A DNA stretch of 64,000 bases, from the sequence record ON529855.1, one strand, 5' to 3'. Position 1 is the first letter of the stretch. Each line of letters opens with the position of its first letter. Made by a program: the position numbers and the translations under genes. Under the pieces are notes generated by a model that saw nothing but the letters and a program-made list of their open reading frames with translations, was not told the DNA's origin and searched no databases. Of the stretch, positions 1-30,150 are shown in pieces.

Positions 1-103
1 AGCGGACAAAAGTTAACAAGAGGTTAACGCCGTGGCGATTTTTCAGGCGCGCTCGCGGCGAACGGGCGTTAACCTTAACGGCCGTTTACAAAGCCAGGCC
101 CGC

Positions 104-433
104 CTAGTGCGCGTGGAAGTCCACGCGCCCGGCGGGCGAGACGTCGAAGTCCCAGACGTTGAAGCGGGCGGCCTCGGCGGCCTCGGCCTCTTCAGCCGCG
201 CGGGCGGCGGCATAGGCCTCGCCTTCGGCCTTGTGGGCCGCTTCGGCCTCGGCCAGTTCCGCGCACTCGCGGGCGTAGGCCTCGGGGCAGCCGTAGCCCG
301 TGGGGCGGTTGGGGCGCGCGTCGAGCCACGCCTGCGCGGCGGCGACCGTGACGCCCGCCATGACCGGGCGGACGCCGTAGTCGTTGCGGTGCAGGGCGTA
401 GTAGAGGTCGAGGGTTTCCTGATCGGCGGTCAT
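104..433 (-). CDS. hypothetical phage early protein (109 aa)
   Basis: ATG at 433 with GGAGAG RBS, downstream of CtrA box 487. Confidence 0.75.
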   Translation of the reverse strand: MTADQETLDLYYALHRNDYGVRPVMAGVTVAAAQAWLDARPNRPTGYGCPEAYARECAELAEAEAAHKAEGEAYAAARAAEEAEAAEAARFNVWDFDVSPAGRVDFHAH

Positions 434-510
434 CACGTCTCTCCGGCGGGCCAGTCCCGCCACGTCCTCACCCTAGCGGACAGGTGTTAACAAGAGGTTA
501 ACAGCCGCGA

Positions 511-605
511 GAAAATCGGGCAGGGTCCCCGGTCGAAAAATCAGGCAGGGTCCCCGGTCGAAAAATCAGGCAGGGTCCCCGGTCGAAAAATCAGGCAGGG
601 TCCCC
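511..605. repeat. 25-bp tandem repeat GAAAAATCAGGCAGGGTCCCCGGTC (about 4 copies)
   Basis: CAGGGTCCCC at 521, 546, 571, 596. Confidence 0.95.
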
Positions 606-633
606 ATTAACCTTAACGGGCGGGGCGCTCTCG

Positions 634-867
634 TCACTGGCGCGTGTGCCAGTGACGCGCCAGTCGGGAGGTTCGCGGGTTTGTCCCGTCACTATCCCAT
701 TGCCCCGCCGCGACCCAGCCGATGGCGTCGCGCGCGTTGCGGGGATTGTGCTCGGCACCAGAGTCCAAGTCTAGCAGAACCGCGCCATGTGCTCGAACGT
801 CGTCTGGATAACGGGCCTCTATGGCGTTGGCGAGGCGAACCGCTAAGACGTTGCTGCGTCGGATCAT
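634..867 (-). CDS. hypothetical protein (77 aa)
   Basis: Start follows the stop of the 869-982 ORF by 1 nt. Confidence 0.6.
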   Translation of the reverse strand: MIRRSNVLAVRLANAIEARYPDDVRAHGAVLLDLDSGAEHNPRNARDAIGWVAAGQWDSDGTNPRTSRLARHWHTRQ

Positions 868-868
868 G

Positions 869-982
869 TCAGCGCCCTTTCCGGGAGTAGGAGCCTTTGC
901 CCTTGCGGGCCTTGACCACGCGGACCCGGTAAGCGGGGGTGGCGAGGGCGGCGGCGGCGGGGTTGCGTTTCGGGGCGGCCAT
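869..982 (-). CDS. ArfA-like small basic protein (37 aa)
   Basis: Hand translation MAAPKRNPAAAALATPAYRVRVVKARKGKGSYSRKGR; GGAGA RBS; CtrA box 1025; KGKGSYxRK is the ArfA core motif. Confidence 0.65.
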   Translation of the reverse strand: MAAPKRNPAAAALATPAYRVRVVKARKGKGSYSRKGR

Positions 983-1035
983 GGGTGTCTCCGTGGTTGA
1001 TAGAGACACCCTAGCCGACAGAAGTTAACAAGAGG

Positions 1036-1482
1036 TTAAGCGTCTGGATATTGCGCCTGAAGCTTCGCCAGCGTGGCCCGGTCCTCGGCTTCGGCGGCGC
1101 GGCGGGCCTCGTCGCGGCGCTTTGCGGCGGCGGTGCGCTTGGCGTCGCGGGCGGCGGTTTCAGGGGCCAGCCACGCCGGGTCCGCGCCCTCGGCGACCGG
1201 GGCCAGGTAGGACAGGGGGAAGGACACCTCGGCCCAGTCCTGATAGCCGTAGCTTCCCGAAACGTAGAATTTGACGTCCACGGTTTCAGGCTTGTCGCCG
1301 CGCGCCTCGTCCAGTTCCCAGCTTTCGAGATAGCCATAGACGACAGTGTCCAGACGTTGGTCCTTGGGCTTCACAGGCTCATCCAGCCGGAAGATGTAAA
1401 GCGCGCGGGCCAAGTGCTCCAGCGCCTCGTTCAGGGCGTCGCGCTCGGTCACAAAAGCCTTGAGACGGTCAGGGGTCAGCAT
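1036..1482 (-). CDS. hypothetical protein (148 aa)
   Basis: GGAGA RBS; TAA stop lies inside CtrA box 1025. Confidence 0.75.
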   Translation of the reverse strand: MLTPDRLKAFVTERDALNEALEHLARALYIFRLDEPVKPKDQRLDTVVYGYLESWELDEARGDKPETVDVKFYVSGSYGYQDWAEVSFPLSYLAPVAEGADPAWLAPETAARDAKRTAAAKRRDEARRAAEAEDRATLAKLQAQYPDA

Positions 1483-1497
1483 GGGCGGTTCTCCGGT

Positions 1498-1971
1498 TCA
1501 GGTCGCGGCGGTTTCGGTCAGGGCGGCGCGCAGGGCTTGGGTGACGGGGCGGATCGTCAGGGGATAGGCTTTCGAGACGTCCCAGTGGCGTTGCATCAGG
1601 GCTTCGGCCTCGTCCAGAGTCTCGGCGGTCCCCTCCTTCAGCTTGACCCAGCCGGGGGCGATTGACGACACGTCCTCGATCACGACATAGGGCGCGGGCA
1701 GACGCACAACCTCAAACCGCAAGGCCGGGTTTTCCGCCACGCCGCACGACTTGACGACTTTGAAGTGCGACTCATCCACGACGCGCAAGGCAAAGCGCGC
1801 CTGATAGGTGTCGGCGTCTTTCTTTTCGACGAAAAGGCCCAGTCCGTTGTTGCGCTCCCACTCGGCCAGCTTCTTGGTGAAGCGGGCGGGCGGCTTCGGC
1901 GCGCCGTCCGTGAAACGGATCGTGGCGCCGTAGGGGGCCAGCGCGTGCAGTTCGGTGGCGGTCAGAAACAT
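1498..1971 (-). CDS. hypothetical protein, N-terminus resembles an alphaproteobacterial plasmid/ICE family (F-DG-P-PP-RF-KKL--W---N)
   Basis: First gene after CtrA box 2016; motif recalled, not searched. Confidence 0.75.
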   Translation of the reverse strand: MFLTATELHALAPYGATIRFTDGAPKPPARFTKKLAEWERNNGLGLFVEKKDADTYQARFALRVVDESHFKVVKSCGVAENPALRFEVVRLPAPYVVIEDVSSIAPGWVKLKEGTAETLDEAEALMQRHWDVSKAYPLTIRPVTQALRAALTETAAT

Positions 1972-2110
1972 GGGGGCTCTCCCGTAGATGATGCGTCGGT
2001 TCTAGCACCGATTCGTTAACAAGAGGTTAACGGGCCGGGCGGGACTGGCGGGCGTTAACCTTAACGGCGGGCAGGCAGGATCAGGCCCGCCGAGGAGGCG
2101 GGCCGTCGCC

Positions 2111-2623
2111 TTAAACCGTGATGGCGTCGCGGGCCTTGGTCAGTTCCTCGATCAGCACATCAAGGCGGCGCACCGCCTCTTCGCCGCTGTCACAGTCTTC
2201 CTTGGCGTCCAGTTCCACCATGACGGCGGTGAAGATGGTGTCGCCCCCGTCCGTCGCATCGGCCAGGGTTTCCATCCACGCGTAATCCGCCTCGCCGTAG
2301 GCGTTGGCGAACTCGCGTTGCCACGGCGACAGGGGCGTGTCGGGCAGGGTGACGCCCAGCGTATGCGGCATCAGGTTGGTGGCGACTTTCAGGATTTGGA
2401 ATGACCCCGCCATGCCGTCGTCATAGGCGCATTGCAGTTCCTTGGCGATCTGGCGGGCGAGGGCGTCGCCGGTCGCCGCGCCTTGATCGTCGCCCAGCAC
2501 GGCCTCGTCGTCGCCAAGGTCTCGGGTCAGCAGCACGATGGCCTGATATTGATGGTCATGGTGGGCGCGGCAGTGCTCCACCACGTCGGCGCGCGGCAGG
2601 ATGAAAGGGGTAAGGTCGGTCAT
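2111..2623 (-). CDS. hypothetical protein (170 aa)
   Basis: CtrA box 2666, GGGAGA RBS. Confidence 0.8.
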   Translation of the reverse strand: MTDLTPFILPRADVVEHCRAHHDHQYQAIVLLTRDLGDDEAVLGDDQGAATGDALARQIAKELQCAYDDGMAGSFQILKVATNLMPHTLGVTLPDTPLSPWQREFANAYGEADYAWMETLADATDGGDTIFTAVMVELDAKEDCDSGEEAVRRLDVLIEELTKARDAITV

Positions 2624-2735
2624 GGGCTCTCCCGTCGATGATGCGTCGGTTCTAGCACCGATTCGTTAACAAGAGGTTAACGCGCCGGGCGGGGCGGCGG
2701 GCGTTAACCTTAACGGAAGGTGAAGGGTCGGCGCG

Positions 2736-3065
2736 TCAGGGGAGGCGCGCCGGGTTCAGTGACAGACTGACGCGGCGGGCCTTGGACGGCTTGCCGGTCA
2801 GGATTCGCTTGTCGGTCTTGGCCCCGCAGCAGGTGCAGACGGCCCGACCGAGATCGAACCGGACCGAGGCCAGGGGGTCGGCGGTGCCGTTCACGGTCAG
2901 TTTGAGCGCCACGTCTGACAGCTTGGGGTGATGGCCCTGTCTGCCCCGGCGGCGCTCGACGTGGGCGCTCATGCCCGCCGCGTTGCGGTTGCCCCGGCGG
3001 ACCACAGTCCCGGCGACCTTGTAGAGGCCGCCGGAAAAGGTGTTGTCGATGGCGTAGCGCCGCAT
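2736..3065 (-). CDS. hypothetical protein with CxCC motif (109 aa)
   Basis: TGATG coupling to upstream ORF. Confidence 0.65.
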   Translation of the reverse strand: MRRYAIDNTFSGGLYKVAGTVVRRGNRNAAGMSAHVERRRGRQGHHPKLSDVALKLTVNGTADPLASVRFDLGRAVCTCCGAKTDKRILTGKPSKARRVSLSLNPARLP

Positions 3066-3238
3066 CAGGCGTTCACGTCAAAGCGGCCAACGCGGTTCCC
3101 ATTGACGTCGCGCACGGCGCCCATGTCGGCCCCGTTCTCGATCTTGTCGGCGAGGTCGCGCAGGATGCGGGCGAGTTCGCCGGGCTTGGCGTCGTCGTCA
3201 AAAGCGGCGTTGCCGGTGTCGATTTCCAGTTTGAACAT
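3065..3238 (-). CDS. conserved phage hypothetical protein (57 aa, MFKLEIDTGNAAF...DVNGNRVG)
   Basis: Hand-translated; GGAGA RBS; CtrA box 3281. Confidence 0.75.
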   Translation of the reverse strand: MFKLEIDTGNAAFDDDAKPGELARILRDLADKIENGADMGAVRDVNGNRVGRFDVNA

Positions 3239-3424
3239 GGTCTGTCTCCGTTTCGATCCTTAGACCATAGCCGACAAAAGTTAACAATAGGTTAAGGGCT
3301 TCGCGGCCTGTTGCGAGGGGTTGGCGTTAACCTTAACGGGGCGGGGCAAAAGAGGGACGGCGGCCATCCCGGCGCCGTCCAGTTTACCGCGATCAGCGTT
3401 CGCGGCGACGCGTTCGGTTGCCGC

Positions 3425-3724
3425 CTAGAGGGCCGTCAGGGCGTGCCACAGGGCGTTAGGGACCACGCCGCCCGCCGCGACCGGATCGAAGGCGGTTTCC
3501 CCGCCCTCGGGGCCGTAGTGGGGCATGACGCAGCCGGGCAGGGCGTCGATCATGCGGATGCGGTAGAGCGGAACGTCTGCGAAAGGGGGGTTCTCAACCC
3601 GGCCCAGGACCTCGGCGCGACCTTCGCCGCCATTGAGGTAGCCCGGCGCATAGGTCACGATCTGGCCCGGCGCAAAGGCGGTGTTTTCCGGGGTGCGGAT
3701 AGGGGCGACGGCGATGCGGGTCAT
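3425..3724 (-). CDS. hypothetical protein, possible SH3-like beta barrel (99 aa)
   Basis: Follows the 3726-3905 ORF; PGQIV...EVLG...LYRI pattern. Confidence 0.65.
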   Translation of the reverse strand: MTRIAVAPIRTPENTAFAPGQIVTYAPGYLNGGEGRAEVLGRVENPPFADVPLYRIRMIDALPGCVMPHYGPEGGETAFDPVAAGGVVPNALWHALTAL

Positions 3725-3725
3725 G

Positions 3726-3905
3726 TCAGGCTCCAGCGGACAGAAGGACGGCGGTCGAAAGGTGTTGCGTCGCCTGCTTGCGCAGGGCGGCGGTGAGGAG
3801 GCGGGCGGCTTCCTTGGCGTTCCCGGCCAGCGCCGCCGCTTCGGCGCGCTTGGCGAAAAAGGCCTTGGACTTGCGGGCGCGCCGGGCGCGTTGGTAGTCG
3901 GTCAT
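3726..3905 (-). CDS. small basic helical protein (59 aa)
   Basis: Hand-translated MTDYQRARRARKSKAFFAKR...; CtrA box 3950. Confidence 0.65.
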   Translation of the reverse strand: MTDYQRARRARKSKAFFAKRAEAAALAGNAKEAARLLTAALRKQATQHLSTAVLLSAGA

Positions 3906-4035
3906 CGGGCTTGCTCCCTTGTGATGCCTCTAGTCCTACAGGACAGAAGTTAACAAGAGGTTAACGCCACGAACTTTTCGGCCGCCGGGCGGCGCGGGCG
4001 GCGTTAACCTTAACGCCGGGCGGCGGCGGGGCGGC

Positions 4036-4251
4036 CTAGCGGCGGCCAGCCCCTTGGGTCTTTTGGGCCAGGCGCCGCTCGCGCCCGGCGGTCCAGCCCC
4101 GGCGGTAGGCGTCGCCGATCTGGCGACGGTCCACGCCCGCCGCCCACGACATCCGGTTGTCGCGGCGCCCGTATTCCAGCCCGGACTCGGCGTCGATGAC
4201 GCCGCCGTGATATTGCGCCATCAGGGCGCGTTCCGTGACCGGGAGCCCCAT
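4036..4251 (-). CDS. hypothetical protein with Rmf/CrpP-like YxxGxxD...AYxxGW motif (71 aa)
   Basis: Last gene of a translationally coupled 3-gene operon. Confidence 0.6.
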   Translation of the reverse strand: MGLPVTERALMAQYHGGVIDAESGLEYGRRDNRMSWAAGVDRRQIGDAYRRGWTAGRERRLAQKTQGAGRR

Positions 4252-4475
4252 CAGTGAACCCCGCCCAGCCGGGCGGCGCGCTGGTCGTCGTTTTCCATAT
4301 AGAAGTGACCGTCGATGCGGTAGATGCGTTTTCCGGCGTCATAGGGGCGCAGGCCCCCGAACGCGACTTGGAAGGTGGCGGGGGCGTCGCCCACGTAGAG
4401 GGTCGCGCCGTCCGGCTTGACGCAGACGGCGGCCCCCTCGCGGACCTGAACGGTTCCGATCAGGCGGCGGGCCAT
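4251..4475 (-). CDS. hypothetical protein (74 aa)
   Basis: TGATG coupling on both sides. Confidence 0.7.
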   Translation of the reverse strand: MARRLIGTVQVREGAAVCVKPDGATLYVGDAPATFQVAFGGLRPYDAGKRIYRIDGHFYMENDDQRAARLGGVH

Positions 4476-4774
4476 CAGGCGGCGGCCTTCTTGGCGGCGG
4501 GCTTATAGCCCTCGACGCGGCCTTCCAGCAGGGCGGACCCGTCCAGCGGACCCTCGAACGAGTCCACGTCGTCCATGGCCGCCATCGTCACGGCGCGGAA
4601 GGCCTTTTTGCGGACGACGGAATTCACCGCCCCGTCGTTGGCGCGGCTGACGGCGCGGTAGCAGGCTTCGGGGTGAGATTGAGCGCGGACGGTGCGCTTA
4701 TAGACGCCCATGTCGTCGCCCATCCAGAACATGACGACGAACTCTTGGCGTTCGGGGCGGATCGGGTGTTGCAT
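4475..4774 (-). CDS. hypothetical protein (99 aa)
   Basis: AAGGGA RBS before ATG 4774; CtrA box 4826. Confidence 0.7.
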   Translation of the reverse strand: MQHPIRPERQEFVVMFWMGDDMGVYKRTVRAQSHPEACYRAVSRANDGAVNSVVRKKAFRAVTMAAMDDVDSFEGPLDGSALLEGRVEGYKPAAKKAAA

Positions 4775-4925
4775 CGCGGGTGGTCCCTTGCGGTGGTTTG
4801 TTCCCTTATACATAGGGGACAGAAGTTAACAAGAGGTTAAGACGCGAAAGTTTTTTGGGCGGGGCAGGCGGGCGTTAACCTTAACGACGGGTTAATGGAT
4901 CAGCGGCCCCGAAGGGCCGCCCCTG

Positions 4926-5345
4926 TCAGGCCGCGACCGGCGCGCGCAACAGGGTCCACAGACGGTCCATCGCCTTGTTGACGACGTGGGGCGACCCGAC
5001 GCCGAACGGCGTGACGTTGACCACGTCGGCGGACTTCCAGACATAGGCCCGGATCGTCGCGACGCGGGGACCGTGCGGCGGCTGTTCGGTGGTGACGAAC
5101 AGGGTGACGCCCAAGGCGGGGACGTCGTAGAAGCCGCCGGGGAACTTCGTGCCGAAGCCCTTCATGGCGCCCTTGTCGAACCAATGCCCGCGACGACGGC
5201 GCGCGTAGTCGCGTTCGATATTGGCGAGGCAGTTGCTCGATCCCTCGAAGGCCGGGCCTTCGTGCGGCGCGGCGGCGGCGGCGGCGAGGAGGCCCGGCAG
5301 GGCGGCGGCGGCGGCTTGGGCGATGCGTTCGGCTTGGGTGGTCAT
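4926..5345 (-). CDS. hypothetical protein (139 aa)
   Basis: GGAGA RBS; CtrA box 5387. Confidence 0.8.
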   Translation of the reverse strand: MTTQAERIAQAAAAALPGLLAAAAAAPHEGPAFEGSSNCLANIERDYARRRRGHWFDKGAMKGFGTKFPGGFYDVPALGVTLFVTTEQPPHGPRVATIRAYVWKSADVVNVTPFGVGSPHVVNKAMDRLWTLLRAPVAA

Positions 5346-5492
5346 GGTCGTCTCCGGTTTGATAGGTCCAACCTACAGGGGAGAAGTTAACAAAACGTTA
5401 ACGGCCGTCAAGGTCTTTCGGGCCGCGCGTTAAGGTTAACGGCGGGCGGGCGGCAGGGATGCGCCCCGGCGCGAGGCCGGGGCGATCCTGGG

Positions 5493-5813
5493 TCAGCCGA
5501 TCAGGCGCGTCTTGAGCGTCGCCCGGCCTTCCGGCGTCAGCTTGGCGCGTTGGGCGCGGAGGAAGTCAAGCCCCTTTTGATAGGAGTCGATCCTGCCGCC
5601 GTATTGGCGCTCCAACCACTTCAACGGCTCCGGGTAATGCGAGGCGTAGAAGGCCACGCGACCCGGCCTGATGCGGGGGAACAGCTTGGCGCGGGCCTCT
5701 TTGATCGAGGTCGCGCCGGGGACGGGCAGTTCCGCGACCACGCGCCCCTTGCGGAGGATATGGGCCGTGTTCAGTTCCGGCGCGTAGGCGTGGCGTTCGA
5801 GGATCAGTTTCAT
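5493..5813 (-). CDS. hypothetical protein (106 aa)
   Basis: GGAGA RBS; CtrA box 5856. Confidence 0.8.
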   Translation of the reverse strand: MKLILERHAYAPELNTAHILRKGRVVAELPVPGATSIKEARAKLFPRIRPGRVAFYASHYPEPLKWLERQYGGRIDSYQKGLDFLRAQRAKLTPEGRATLKTRLIG

Positions 5814-5866
5814 CGGTCGTCTCCGTTTCGATCCTTAGACCATAGGCGACAGAAGTTAACAAGAGG

Positions 5867-6508
5867 TTAAGAGGTGAAGTTTTCCAGATAGCGGCGGCGC
5901 ATCCCCGCGACCGTCGTCGGCGTGACCCGGACAATGTCGGCGTTTTTGCGCATCATATCCGCCCGCATGAACGACGTCGTCGCCAATTGCAGGGTGTGGT
6001 TCACGCAGGAATGATAGCCGTCTTTCAGGCGCTCAATCGGCCACGTCGCCGGTTGCAGCTTGGCGCGTTCCAAGGTCTCCAGCGGGATCGGCACGGCGAG
6101 GTCGTCGCGGTGCTGATCGGACTCCGTCCGTTCATAGGTCGCGCCGCGCGGATAGACGCCCAAGATCAAATCCCCGTTGTTCAGCCGGAACCACGTCAGG
6201 CCGGAACGCCCGTCGTCGTCAACCGCTTGCGCCAGCACGTAGCGGGCCACGGCGGCGTCCGCCGGGACGGCCCACGCCACAACCGAATCGAGCATATTGC
6301 CGTCTTCGTCATGGGCGAAGATCGCGGACGGGGGGCCAGGTTCCTCCACGACGCCGGACGGGTCTAGGCCATAGCGCCCTTCGAGCCAGACGGCGCGGGC
6401 CATGGTCAGGCCGTCGCGATAGGCGTCGCGTTCGGCCTCCGTCTCAAAGGGGCCGTGCAGGACGTTCGCCGGGCAACGCATGTAAAAGCCAACCGCTGAA
6501 TCGGTCAT
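5867..6508 (-). CDS. hypothetical protein (213 aa)
   Basis: GGGAGA RBS; CtrA box 6551; stop inside box 5856. Confidence 0.8.
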   Translation of the reverse strand: MTDSAVGFYMRCPANVLHGPFETEAERDAYRDGLTMARAVWLEGRYGLDPSGVVEEPGPPSAIFAHDEDGNMLDSVVAWAVPADAAVARYVLAQAVDDDGRSGLTWFRLNNGDLILGVYPRGATYERTESDQHRDDLAVPIPLETLERAKLQPATWPIERLKDGYHSCVNHTLQLATTSFMRADMMRKNADIVRVTPTTVAGMRRRYLENFTS

Positions 6509-11109: not shown

Positions 11110-11733
11110 TCAGCCCAGTTGAATCGTGCCGTCGTCGGCGGTGTAGAGATAGACCTCTTCGGGGTATTTTTGCGCGGCTTCCGTCAGGGCCTCGCCCTCC
11201 GCTTCGGGCCAGTCGCCGTCTTCCCAGAACCCGACGCCGTTACGGGTCCGGGTCATGTAGAAGTCATATCCGGCCTGCTCTTGCACCGAACAGTTGACCG
11301 CGCGGACCTCGCCCGACGCATAGGCCGCTTCCAAGGTGGCGGCGTTCTCGCGTTGGAAGCGTTCGCAGTCCGCGACCATTTCGCGCAAGCCGTCCGGGTG
11401 AATCTCTTCCGGGCAAATGGTGTTGTCGCGGTCCGAATCGGCGGCGGGGTGTCCGGTCGGATACTCGGCGCCGTTCGAGGCGGCGGCGCCGATGTAGCCC
11501 CGCGTGAACGGATCGCACGGCGTCAGGACGGCCCAGGATTCGGCCTCATAGGCGGCGCGCGCCTCGGCGTTGGCCTCTTCGAGGGCGTCCACAACCGCGC
11601 GGGCTTCCGCGACCAGAGCGGCGGGTTCCGTGTGCGGATATTGCATCACCGTCAGGGCGGCGATCTGTTGCGCCGTCAGGGGGCTGAACTCCGGGACGGT
11701 GGTTTCAGCGGTCAGCTTGGCGAGGGTGGTCAT
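11110..11733 (-). CDS. conserved phage hypothetical protein (C-terminal GYDF-MTR-RNG-GFW motif)
   Basis: GGGAG RBS before ATG 11733; CtrA box 11777. Confidence 0.8.
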   Translation of the reverse strand: MTTLAKLTAETTVPEFSPLTAQQIAALTVMQYPHTEPAALVAEARAVVDALEEANAEARAAYEAESWAVLTPCDPFTRGYIGAAASNGAEYPTGHPAADSDRDNTICPEEIHPDGLREMVADCERFQRENAATLEAAYASGEVRAVNCSVQEQAGYDFYMTRTRNGVGFWEDGDWPEAEGEALTEAAQKYPEEVYLYTADDGTIQLG

Positions 11734-29788: not shown

Positions 29789-30150
29789 GTTAACCTTAAC
29801 AGAGCGTTAACCTTAATGCCCCTGCCCGCTCTAGGGGTATGACCGGGTATGACCAGGTATGACCGGGTCATACCGGCGCGGATTCCCGCTGAAAATCACC
29901 CGAATTCGCCGAATTGCGCCCAAAATCGCCGGATTTTGACCCTAAATCACTGTTTTTGCTCGATTTTTCGGTATTTCAGGCCCGGCGGCGGCCGTTAACC
30001 TTAACAGGGCGTTAACCTTAACGCGGTTTTGGTTAACGGGGCATTAACCTTAACGCCTGGATGGTTAACGTGGCGTTAACCTTAACGCGGTGATGGTTAA
30101 CGGGCCGTTAACCTTGACGGCGGGAGGGTTAACGGCCCCAGGGTTAATCG
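29789..30150. repeat. Dense non-coding cluster of TTAA-N7-TTAA and GTTAACCTTAAC elements
   Basis: N7 pairs at 29796, 30001, 30033, 30065, 30097 interleaved with N2 pairs. Confidence 0.85.
29834..29875. repeat. 10-bp tandem GGTATGACCR x3 followed by its inverse GGTCATACC
   Basis: gggtatgaccgggtatgaccaggtatgaccgggtcatacc. Confidence 0.85.

Follow-up and report, generated by a model that had tools for sequence, protein, structure and literature searches.

A 37-residue ArfA-family peptide ending at a normal stop codon in Brevundimonas phage Domovoi, a candidate ribosome-rescue factor of phages infecting Alphaproteobacteria

Brevundimonas phage vB_BpoS-Domovoi (ON529855.1), a phiCbK-like siphovirus from sewage that belongs to the Dolichocephalovirinae and has a genome of 352,705 bp, carries a small gene (DOMOVOI_00020) whose 37-residue product is, by sequence, a member of the ArfA family and a regulatory and size variant of it. 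ArfA is generally understood as a reserve factor that bacteria produce only on failure of tmRNA, and it is recorded by surveys in the Gamma- and Betaproteobacteria. The Domovoi form is a core-only version freed from tmRNA control, in phages whose hosts mostly lack ArfA. We consider it probable (roughly 0.6), from sequence comparisons, that the peptide acts as an RF2-dependent rescue factor.

The window analysed here is the first 64 kb (64,000 nucleotides) of the Domovoi genome, its initial 6 kb matching ON529855.1 positions 1–6000 at 100% identity. A previous reading of these letters without database searches (the sequence-only reading) had quoted a 37-aa peptide encoded at 869–982, and translation of the minus strand reproduces it exactly. 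It had also described the ORF as unannotated, which is incorrect, as GenBank already lists DOMOVOI_00020 (USN14477.1) as a "putative ribosome-rescue factor". GenBank gives the name "alternative ribosome-rescue factor" to the genes orthologous to it in Papperlapapp, Kabachok, Bambus and Kikimora, and labels that of Marchewka hypothetical. The gene is single-copy in the Domovoi genome and sits in a block of small early genes, each with its own promoter; Pfam searches of the genes neighbouring arfA gave zero matches, and a functional context is therefore absent. The features discussed are listed below, with window coordinates for all but the last, which lies outside the window.

634–867, minus strand: unannotated 77-codon ORF, beginning 1 nt past the arfA stop (TGACATG junction)
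869–982, minus strand: arfA-like CDS DOMOVOI_00020, 37 codons plus a TGA stop at 869–871, with the ATG at 980–982
983–1011, minus strand: inverted repeat of 10 bp with a 9-nt loop, its 3' arm holding the Shine-Dalgarno sequence; about -16 kcal/mol if transcribed
988–992, minus strand: Shine-Dalgarno sequence GGAGA, 5 nt before the ATG, invariant in six Brevundimonas phage orthologues
1008–1015, minus strand: -10-like element GCTAGGGT, conserved in five orthologous loci
1025–1039, minus strand: TTAA-N7-TTAA (CtrA-type) box, TTAACCTCTTGTTAA on the gene strand, 42 nt upstream of the ATG
224,036–224,291 of ON529855.1, minus strand: unannotated permuted (two-piece) tmRNA, RF04321 at 60.2 bits

The ArfA likeness seen in the bare letters is borne out by a profile search, in which the peptide matches Pfam ArfA (PF03889) at 38.1 bits against a gathering cut-off of 25.5 (E = 1e-9), with no competing family and with residues 9–37 aligned to profile positions 14–42 of 44. 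None of the NCBIfam models matched the 37-aa peptide, PHROGs gave only weak matches to families of unknown function, and the sole phmmer matches among solved structures are E. coli ArfA chains (E about 4e-5). Alignment with E. coli ArfA (YhdL; seen on the ribosome with RF2 in 5MGP, 5U4I, 5H5U and 5MDV) is free of gaps and makes phage residues 5–37 collinear with E. coli residues 12–44, so that phage residue i corresponds to E. coli residue i+7. Identical residues (E. coli numbering) are N14, A18, L20, P23, R26, R28, V29, K31, K34–Y39 and R41–G43, and F25 is replaced by Tyr; the shared features thus include Asn14, Ala18, Leu20, the A-site aromatic with its Arg-x-Arg-Val, and KGKGSY-RK. The channel-binding motif K-K-G-K-G-S-Y-x-R-K is present as R-K-G-K-G-S-Y-S-R-K-G-R, collinear with E. 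coli K33–K44. The hydrophobic patch that E. coli ArfA presents to RF2 is formed by L19, L24 and F25 (Demo et al., PMC5378476), and two of these three contact residues are now Ala in the phage peptide (L19 to A12 and L24 to A17).

The two ends of the peptide depart from E. coli ArfA to different degrees. The RF2-activating N-terminal segment of E. coli ArfA comprises A18, L19, L24 and F25 together with minidomain residues 2–16. Residues 1–7 of the E. coli N-terminal minidomain touch h44 and S12 (PMC5378476), and the phage peptide has no equivalents of them. The sequence-only reading had remarked that the ArfA N-terminal residues are lacking; this holds for the E. coli 1–7 equivalents but is overstated, since the chromosomal ArfAs of Halomonas and Vreelandella (about 45–50 aa) are equally short, with 6–8 residues before the Asn. 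These proteins also share with Domovoi an identical GKGSYSRKGR tail core, but they have DNAL-KA rather than NPxA, a Q-rich segment at 28–30 in place of R-V-V, and 11–23 more residues after the motif, ending in RQAA. The C-terminus of the phage peptide is more unusual than its N-terminus, as it terminates at the equivalent of E. coli K44, three residues short of N47; E. coli ArfA cut at N47 is the shortest active form reported, and shortening it further inactivates it (Demo et al., PMC5378476). The form cut after M40 is inactive through loss of ribosome affinity (PMC5378476). The N47 form has three basic residues beyond M40 (R41, K42 and K44), and the phage peptide keeps them all. Tails of five residues recur in independent lineages, namely Kikimora, P0006, Cr30 and two alphaproteobacterial genomes. 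Off the ribosome an isolated ArfA of 37 aa is expected to be disordered.

In bacteria, arfA specifies about 72 residues and contains a stem-loop at which transcription ends or RNase III cuts, so that the protein comes from a non-stop mRNA. The product is tagged by tmRNA and builds up only when trans-translation fails; the rare full-length protein is unstable because of its hydrophobic tail (PMC8012679, PMC3989581). The Domovoi gene has a different organization. The TGA stop directly follows the basic tail, no terminator-like site or internal stem-loop was found in the coding region, folding of the surrounding mRNA is no better than that of shuffled sequence (z = 0.02), and the peptide lacks a hydrophobic C-terminal extension. 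Unlike E. coli arfA (72 aa encoded, about 55 mature), therefore, the phage gene specifies 37 aa with a true stop and is free of internal stem-loops, RNase III sites and terminators, and it is borne by a phage of a host class in which ArfA is rare. The suggestion that the phage makes a short, properly terminated ArfA is thus well founded and, because of the true stop, the lack of an internal stem-loop and the lack of a hydrophobic tail, we conclude that the Domovoi gene is not subject to the tmRNA-coupled control that is the defining trait of arfA in bacteria. With a normal stop right after the basic tail, constitutive production from its promoter and escape from tmRNA tagging are predicted.

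Tail length was compared in 59 viral and 80 bacterial loci recovered with a narrow peptide pattern, the bacterial set being dominated by Halomonas relatives. The median number of residues past the motif Tyr is 10 in the viral loci (mostly 7–14) and 15 in the bacterial loci, and more than 10 residues are present in 79 of the 80 bacterial loci; Domovoi, with 5, is among the shortest. Within this comparison the early ending is thus a general property of the viral copies. Nearly all of the short ArfA ORFs of Halomonas and Vreelandella finish with RQAA or SQAA at the stop, and this Ala-Ala end, which resembles an ssrA degron, may be another way to keep ArfA unstable.

Domovoi also encodes a tmRNA of its own. 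A search of the whole record gives a full-length RF04321 match (60.2 bits against a gathering score of 47, E = 1.8e-10) that lies in an unannotated gap between the tRNA-Met and tRNA-Cys genes, and the same element has a partial alpha_tmRNA match at 47.8 bits; it is not called by ARAGORN, and the genome paper reports no tmRNA (PMC10070969). Its tag frame reads ASNDNFAAGERVLLAA before a stop and ends in VLLAA, so that the predicted tag is a canonical LAA-type degron. The tmRNA is present, unannotated and 96–100% identical, in all seven B. pondensis jumbo phages, and RF04321 is also above threshold in Gurke, in phiCbK and CcrPW (unannotated in both) and in Bajun, where it is annotated; it is not above threshold in Cr30. 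Judged from these matches, tmRNA is common to the subfamily, with ArfA added in those members that infect Brevundimonas; no arfA copy was found in phiCbK or CcrPW. No RF-1/ArfB domain, Pth or SmpB was found in a search of the whole Domovoi record. As the phage carries its own tmRNA it invests in rescue, and this leans the reading of the peptide in the same direction. In bacteria tmRNA represses ArfA; in Domovoi the stop codon uncouples the two.

We propose that the basic C-terminal half of the peptide (KGKGSY-RKGR) would enter the vacant mRNA channel when a ribosome has stalled on reaching the 3' end of a broken mRNA, and that the N-terminal half (NP-AAAL-TPAYR-RVV) would contact the host release factor RF2, which would then hydrolyse the peptidyl-tRNA without a stop codon and free the ribosome. 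The peptide would be made constitutively, beyond the reach of the tmRNA tagging that keeps bacterial ArfA off, in a host lineage expected to have tmRNA and ArfB and to lack ArfA. The phage would gain in that ribosomes stay available when infection or RNA-targeting host defences cleave mRNAs. We infer ribosome binding, recruitment of RF2 and a benefit to the phage from homology to the E. coli protein. The other known rescue systems, ArfB and tmRNA-SmpB, have the same target and likewise probe the empty mRNA channel with a basic C-terminal tail (PMC5378476, PMC8012679); ArfB has its own GGQ hydrolase domain, whereas the phage peptide would need the host RF2. E. coli ArfA contacts a Trp in the RF2 switch loop (PMC5378476), and this Trp (in DIGWGHQIRSYV) is present in all five alphaproteobacterial RF2s sampled and is missing from RF1, which likewise leans towards rescue.

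The pattern of conservation bears on whether the peptide would activate RF2 or simply occupy the ribosome. Among 74 distinct viral copies, in which the N-terminal positions counted lie outside the search patterns, N14 is present in 63, P15 in 58, A17 in 73, Leu or Val at 20 in 72, and Phe or Tyr at 25 in 71 (E. coli numbering). The N-terminal RF2-facing segment is thus as constrained as the basic tail, which leans towards rescue, because a mere channel plug would not need a conserved N-terminal segment. A peptide that instead filled the empty mRNA channel as a block, perhaps holding RF2 compact and inactive and shutting out tmRNA-SmpB and ArfB, could serve for example to spare phage nascent chains from tagging or to shut down host translation. 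The truncated N-terminal minidomain, the weaker hydrophobic patch with Ala at the L19 and L24 equivalents, the very short tail and the predicted constitutive expression would all suit such a role, and the E. coli A18T form, with RF2 compact, illustrates that binding without activation is possible (PMC5378476, PMC8012679). We nevertheless regard it as unlikely: the A18 equivalent in the phage peptide is Ala rather than a bulky residue, selection on the N-terminal segment is strong across the viral copies, the phage's own tmRNA needs the same ribosomal site free, and stalled ribosomes left unresolved would starve phage translation too.

The viral copies differ systematically from the bacterial ones at one point, in that the invariant Ala lies at position 17 in viral copies (73 of 74) and at 18 in bacterial copies (37 of 42), with an exchange of the Lys next to it; the distance between Asn14 and Tyr39 is the same in the two groups, and Domovoi has Ala at both positions. 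The shift by one residue hints at a changed interface and could indicate that an ArfA-derived basic peptide has taken on a ribosome or RNA function independent of RF2, such as a role in initiation or occupancy of the channel of vacant 30S or 70S particles. The function assigned here is deduced from homology over about 33 residues, and some relatives weakly match Pfam DUF7230, below threshold. But the Domovoi score is above the curated Pfam ArfA threshold with no competitor, and the RF2-facing residues N14, L20, F/Y25 and R26–V29 are retained, so that we think such a reassignment quite improbable and prefer RF2-dependent rescue.

Relatives of the peptide are widespread in viruses. The closest metagenomic proteins are 36–47 aa long, have the Pfam ArfA domain and stop 0–3 residues past RKGR; two homologues on long contigs lie among small ORFans with Tad3, LysC or primase-helicase, which are phage-like settings, and a narrow pattern search finds mini-ArfA relatives in at least 155 IMG/VR contigs. 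Eight Brevundimonas phages of the Dolichocephalovirinae have copies above the Pfam cut-off (Domovoi, Papperlapapp, Kabachok, Bambus, Marchewka, Kikimora, Gurke and Bajun), as do Caulobacter phage Cr30, Roseobacter phage CRP-212 and Citromicrobium phage RXM, and pelagiphage HTVC027P gp30 falls just below it at 20.2 bits. The hosts of the cultured phages found here to carry ArfA relatives are all Alphaproteobacteria. A tblastn search with two divergent mini-ArfAs returned nothing among cultured phages, and a third query returned alphaproteobacterial phages. In Cr30, which is not classified in the Dolichocephalovirinae, the ORF is an unannotated one of 48 codons (KF301602.1, about 11,142–11,285, minus strand; 27.3 bits) with a five-residue tail, flanked by two annotated hypothetical genes. 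The 41-codon ORF of CRP-212 (33.3 bits) lies within the 3' end of the 3.6-kb gp38 gene in another frame, and either the two genes overlap or gp38 is annotated too long.

ArfA is rare in the bacterial class that these phages infect. A published survey found it in none of 2,376 alphaproteobacterial genomes and describes C. crescentus as lacking ArfA and relying on ArfB (PMC11633108); in our sample it is above the cut-off in 7 of 401 alphaproteobacterial species genomes, and the Caulobacter vibrioides control genome gives no ArfA signal even at E <= 1. The few alphaproteobacterial ArfAs include long-tailed and mini forms and carry NPxA, the motif of the phage copies, in place of the DNA[LI] seen in Gammaproteobacteria. 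Mini-ArfA ORFs of 35–40 codons with true stops are present in streamlined alphaproteobacterial genomes of 1.2–1.3 Mb, in contrast to the surveys that report the class to be without ArfA.

ArfA genes have been annotated in phages previously, in the Domovoi record itself and as RXM g10 (PMC8953757) and HTVC027P gp30 (PMC12753301). Both of the latter resemble the Domovoi peptide in being phage-encoded in alphaproteobacterial hosts and in belonging to the subfamily with an NPxA-type N-terminus. RXM g10, however, is 60 aa long with a partly hydrophobic tail of 28 residues as in bacterial arfA, and HTVC027P gp30, an ArfA-domain gene transcribed both early and late in infection (PMC12753301), has an N-terminal extension of 27 residues that the Domovoi peptide lacks. 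In the literature searched we found no description of the miniaturisation of phage ArfAs or of their ending at stop codons, none of the link to ArfA-less hosts, the conserved RF2-facing segment or the co-resident phage tmRNA, and no functional experiment on any phage ArfA.

A broader proposal, which we advance tentatively and at somewhat short of even odds, is that phage mini-ArfAs (35–50 aa with a normal stop) are widespread constitutive rescue factors independent of tmRNA, and that they serve phages of ArfA-less Alphaproteobacteria, in Domovoi together with a tmRNA of the phage, by releasing ribosomes that stall when infection or defence leads to mRNA cleavage, and do so without marking nascent chains for degradation. 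If this is true, the forms of 35–37 aa would be the smallest natural peptides that switch RF2 on without a stop codon. An active peptide would mean that viruses equip their hosts with an entire branch of ribosome quality control, would offer a natural minimal peptide for studying RF2 activation in this state, and would suggest that ribosome rescue is a front in phage-host conflict; an inactive or inhibitory one would be the first natural rescue blocker.

The ORF at 869–982 is a coding gene as judged from its substitution pattern, because all of the codons that vary among five close phages (Domovoi, Papperlapapp, Kabachok, Bambus and Marchewka) do so synonymously (6 of 37 codons, 6 of 6 changes). 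The Kikimora version is 36 aa long with five substitutions and one deletion, in surrounding DNA that is only ~76% identical, and the Shine-Dalgarno sequence and ATG are invariant across the Brevundimonas phage orthologues compared. It is thus very hard to credit that so short an ORF, even in a GC-rich genome rich in spurious ones, is an untranslated chance frame or decaying remnant, when its changes are synonymous only, its ribosome binding site and start are conserved, it is kept in eight Brevundimonas phages across genera, and it has hundreds of viral homologues of the same size. The upstream GTG at 1009 was considered as a start and rejected, since in Bambus and Marchewka, where an additional C separates the ribosome binding site from the ATG, it falls out of frame; the ATG at 982 is therefore taken as the true start. 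Public RNA-labelled sequencing runs gave patchy contigs of low depth, probably derived from DNA, and one such run had none across 601–1000. An antisense ORF at 821–1000 was also considered and is ruled out, as the substitution pattern matches the minus-strand frame.

The 77-codon ORF that begins just past the arfA stop (634–867) is possibly a translationally coupled downstream gene; it has no match in Pfam. It is identical in Papperlapapp, is lost through a deletion of ~200 bp from Kabachok, Bambus and Marchewka (whose arfA is two codons longer, ending in GA), and is replaced at the same TGACATG junction by a different, unrelated ORF in Kikimora. The 3' junction of arfA looks like a hot-spot at which small genes are inserted. 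A 25-bp tandem repeat (window 512–605; 3.8 copies, 98% identical, with a gene-strand unit of about GGGGACCCTGCCTGATTTTTCGACC), present in 3 to 5 copies among the relatives, lies between the arfA unit and the promoter box that comes next.

The sequence-only reading had given the ORF its own box and a GGAGA ribosome binding site, and both are in place; the box at 1025–1039 shares bases with the stop codon of DOMOVOI_00030, the gene upstream. Its further claim, that the gene is under a CtrA promoter, stands in that a TTAA-N7-TTAA box is present, but the box does not distinguish the gene. There are 59 such boxes in the window where 0.05 are expected, all of them within the first 31.6 kb, and the promoter-type consensus is GTTAACcTcTTGTTAAc followed after about 9 nt by gCTAgg. 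About 40 boxes form a stereotyped unit on the gene strand, in which GTTAACCTCTTGTTAAC is followed by about 9 nt, GCTAgggt, a short leader, GGAGA and the start codon; the distance from box end to start codon is 41–53 nt in 40 units and 42 nt for arfA. With so many boxes in the window, and with this unit in front of about 40 small early genes, the box at 1025–1039 is that of the phage's generic early promoter and is not specific to arfA. Phosphorylated CtrA binds and activates such sites upstream of phiCbK gp005 and gp018 (Mascolo et al., PMC9437464), which makes CtrA control of Domovoi arfA plausible by analogy; the binding evidence concerns phiCbK relatives (PMC9437464), and the Domovoi box is known from its sequence. 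Conservation extends to the N7 spacer (CCTCTTG), which goes beyond the requirements of CtrA and suggests further constraints.

If the leader is long, the Shine-Dalgarno sequence would lie in a stable predicted hairpin formed by the inverted repeat at 983–1011. Because the 5' arm overlaps the -10-like element, the presence of this hairpin in the mRNA depends on where transcription starts. In Kabachok, Bambus and Marchewka the 5' arm has two substitutions, both of which preserve the pairing (C-G to U-G and U-G to C-G), and the hairpin is not conserved in Kikimora. It was considered as a feature special to arfA and set aside, since 9 of the 40 promoter units likewise pair all four Shine-Dalgarno bases, and no regulatory role is assigned to it here.

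The boxes outside the promoter units are TTAAGGTTAAC palindromes between genes. This second class takes the forms GTTAACCTTAAC and GTTAAGGTTAAC, just upstream of promoter boxes, and is found at 29796–30111 and at scattered positions such as 4881, 8606, 10111, 24255, 25414, 27359 and 28730; it includes an array of four boxes with 32-bp spacing at 30001–30111. These palindromes may be terminators or binding sites.
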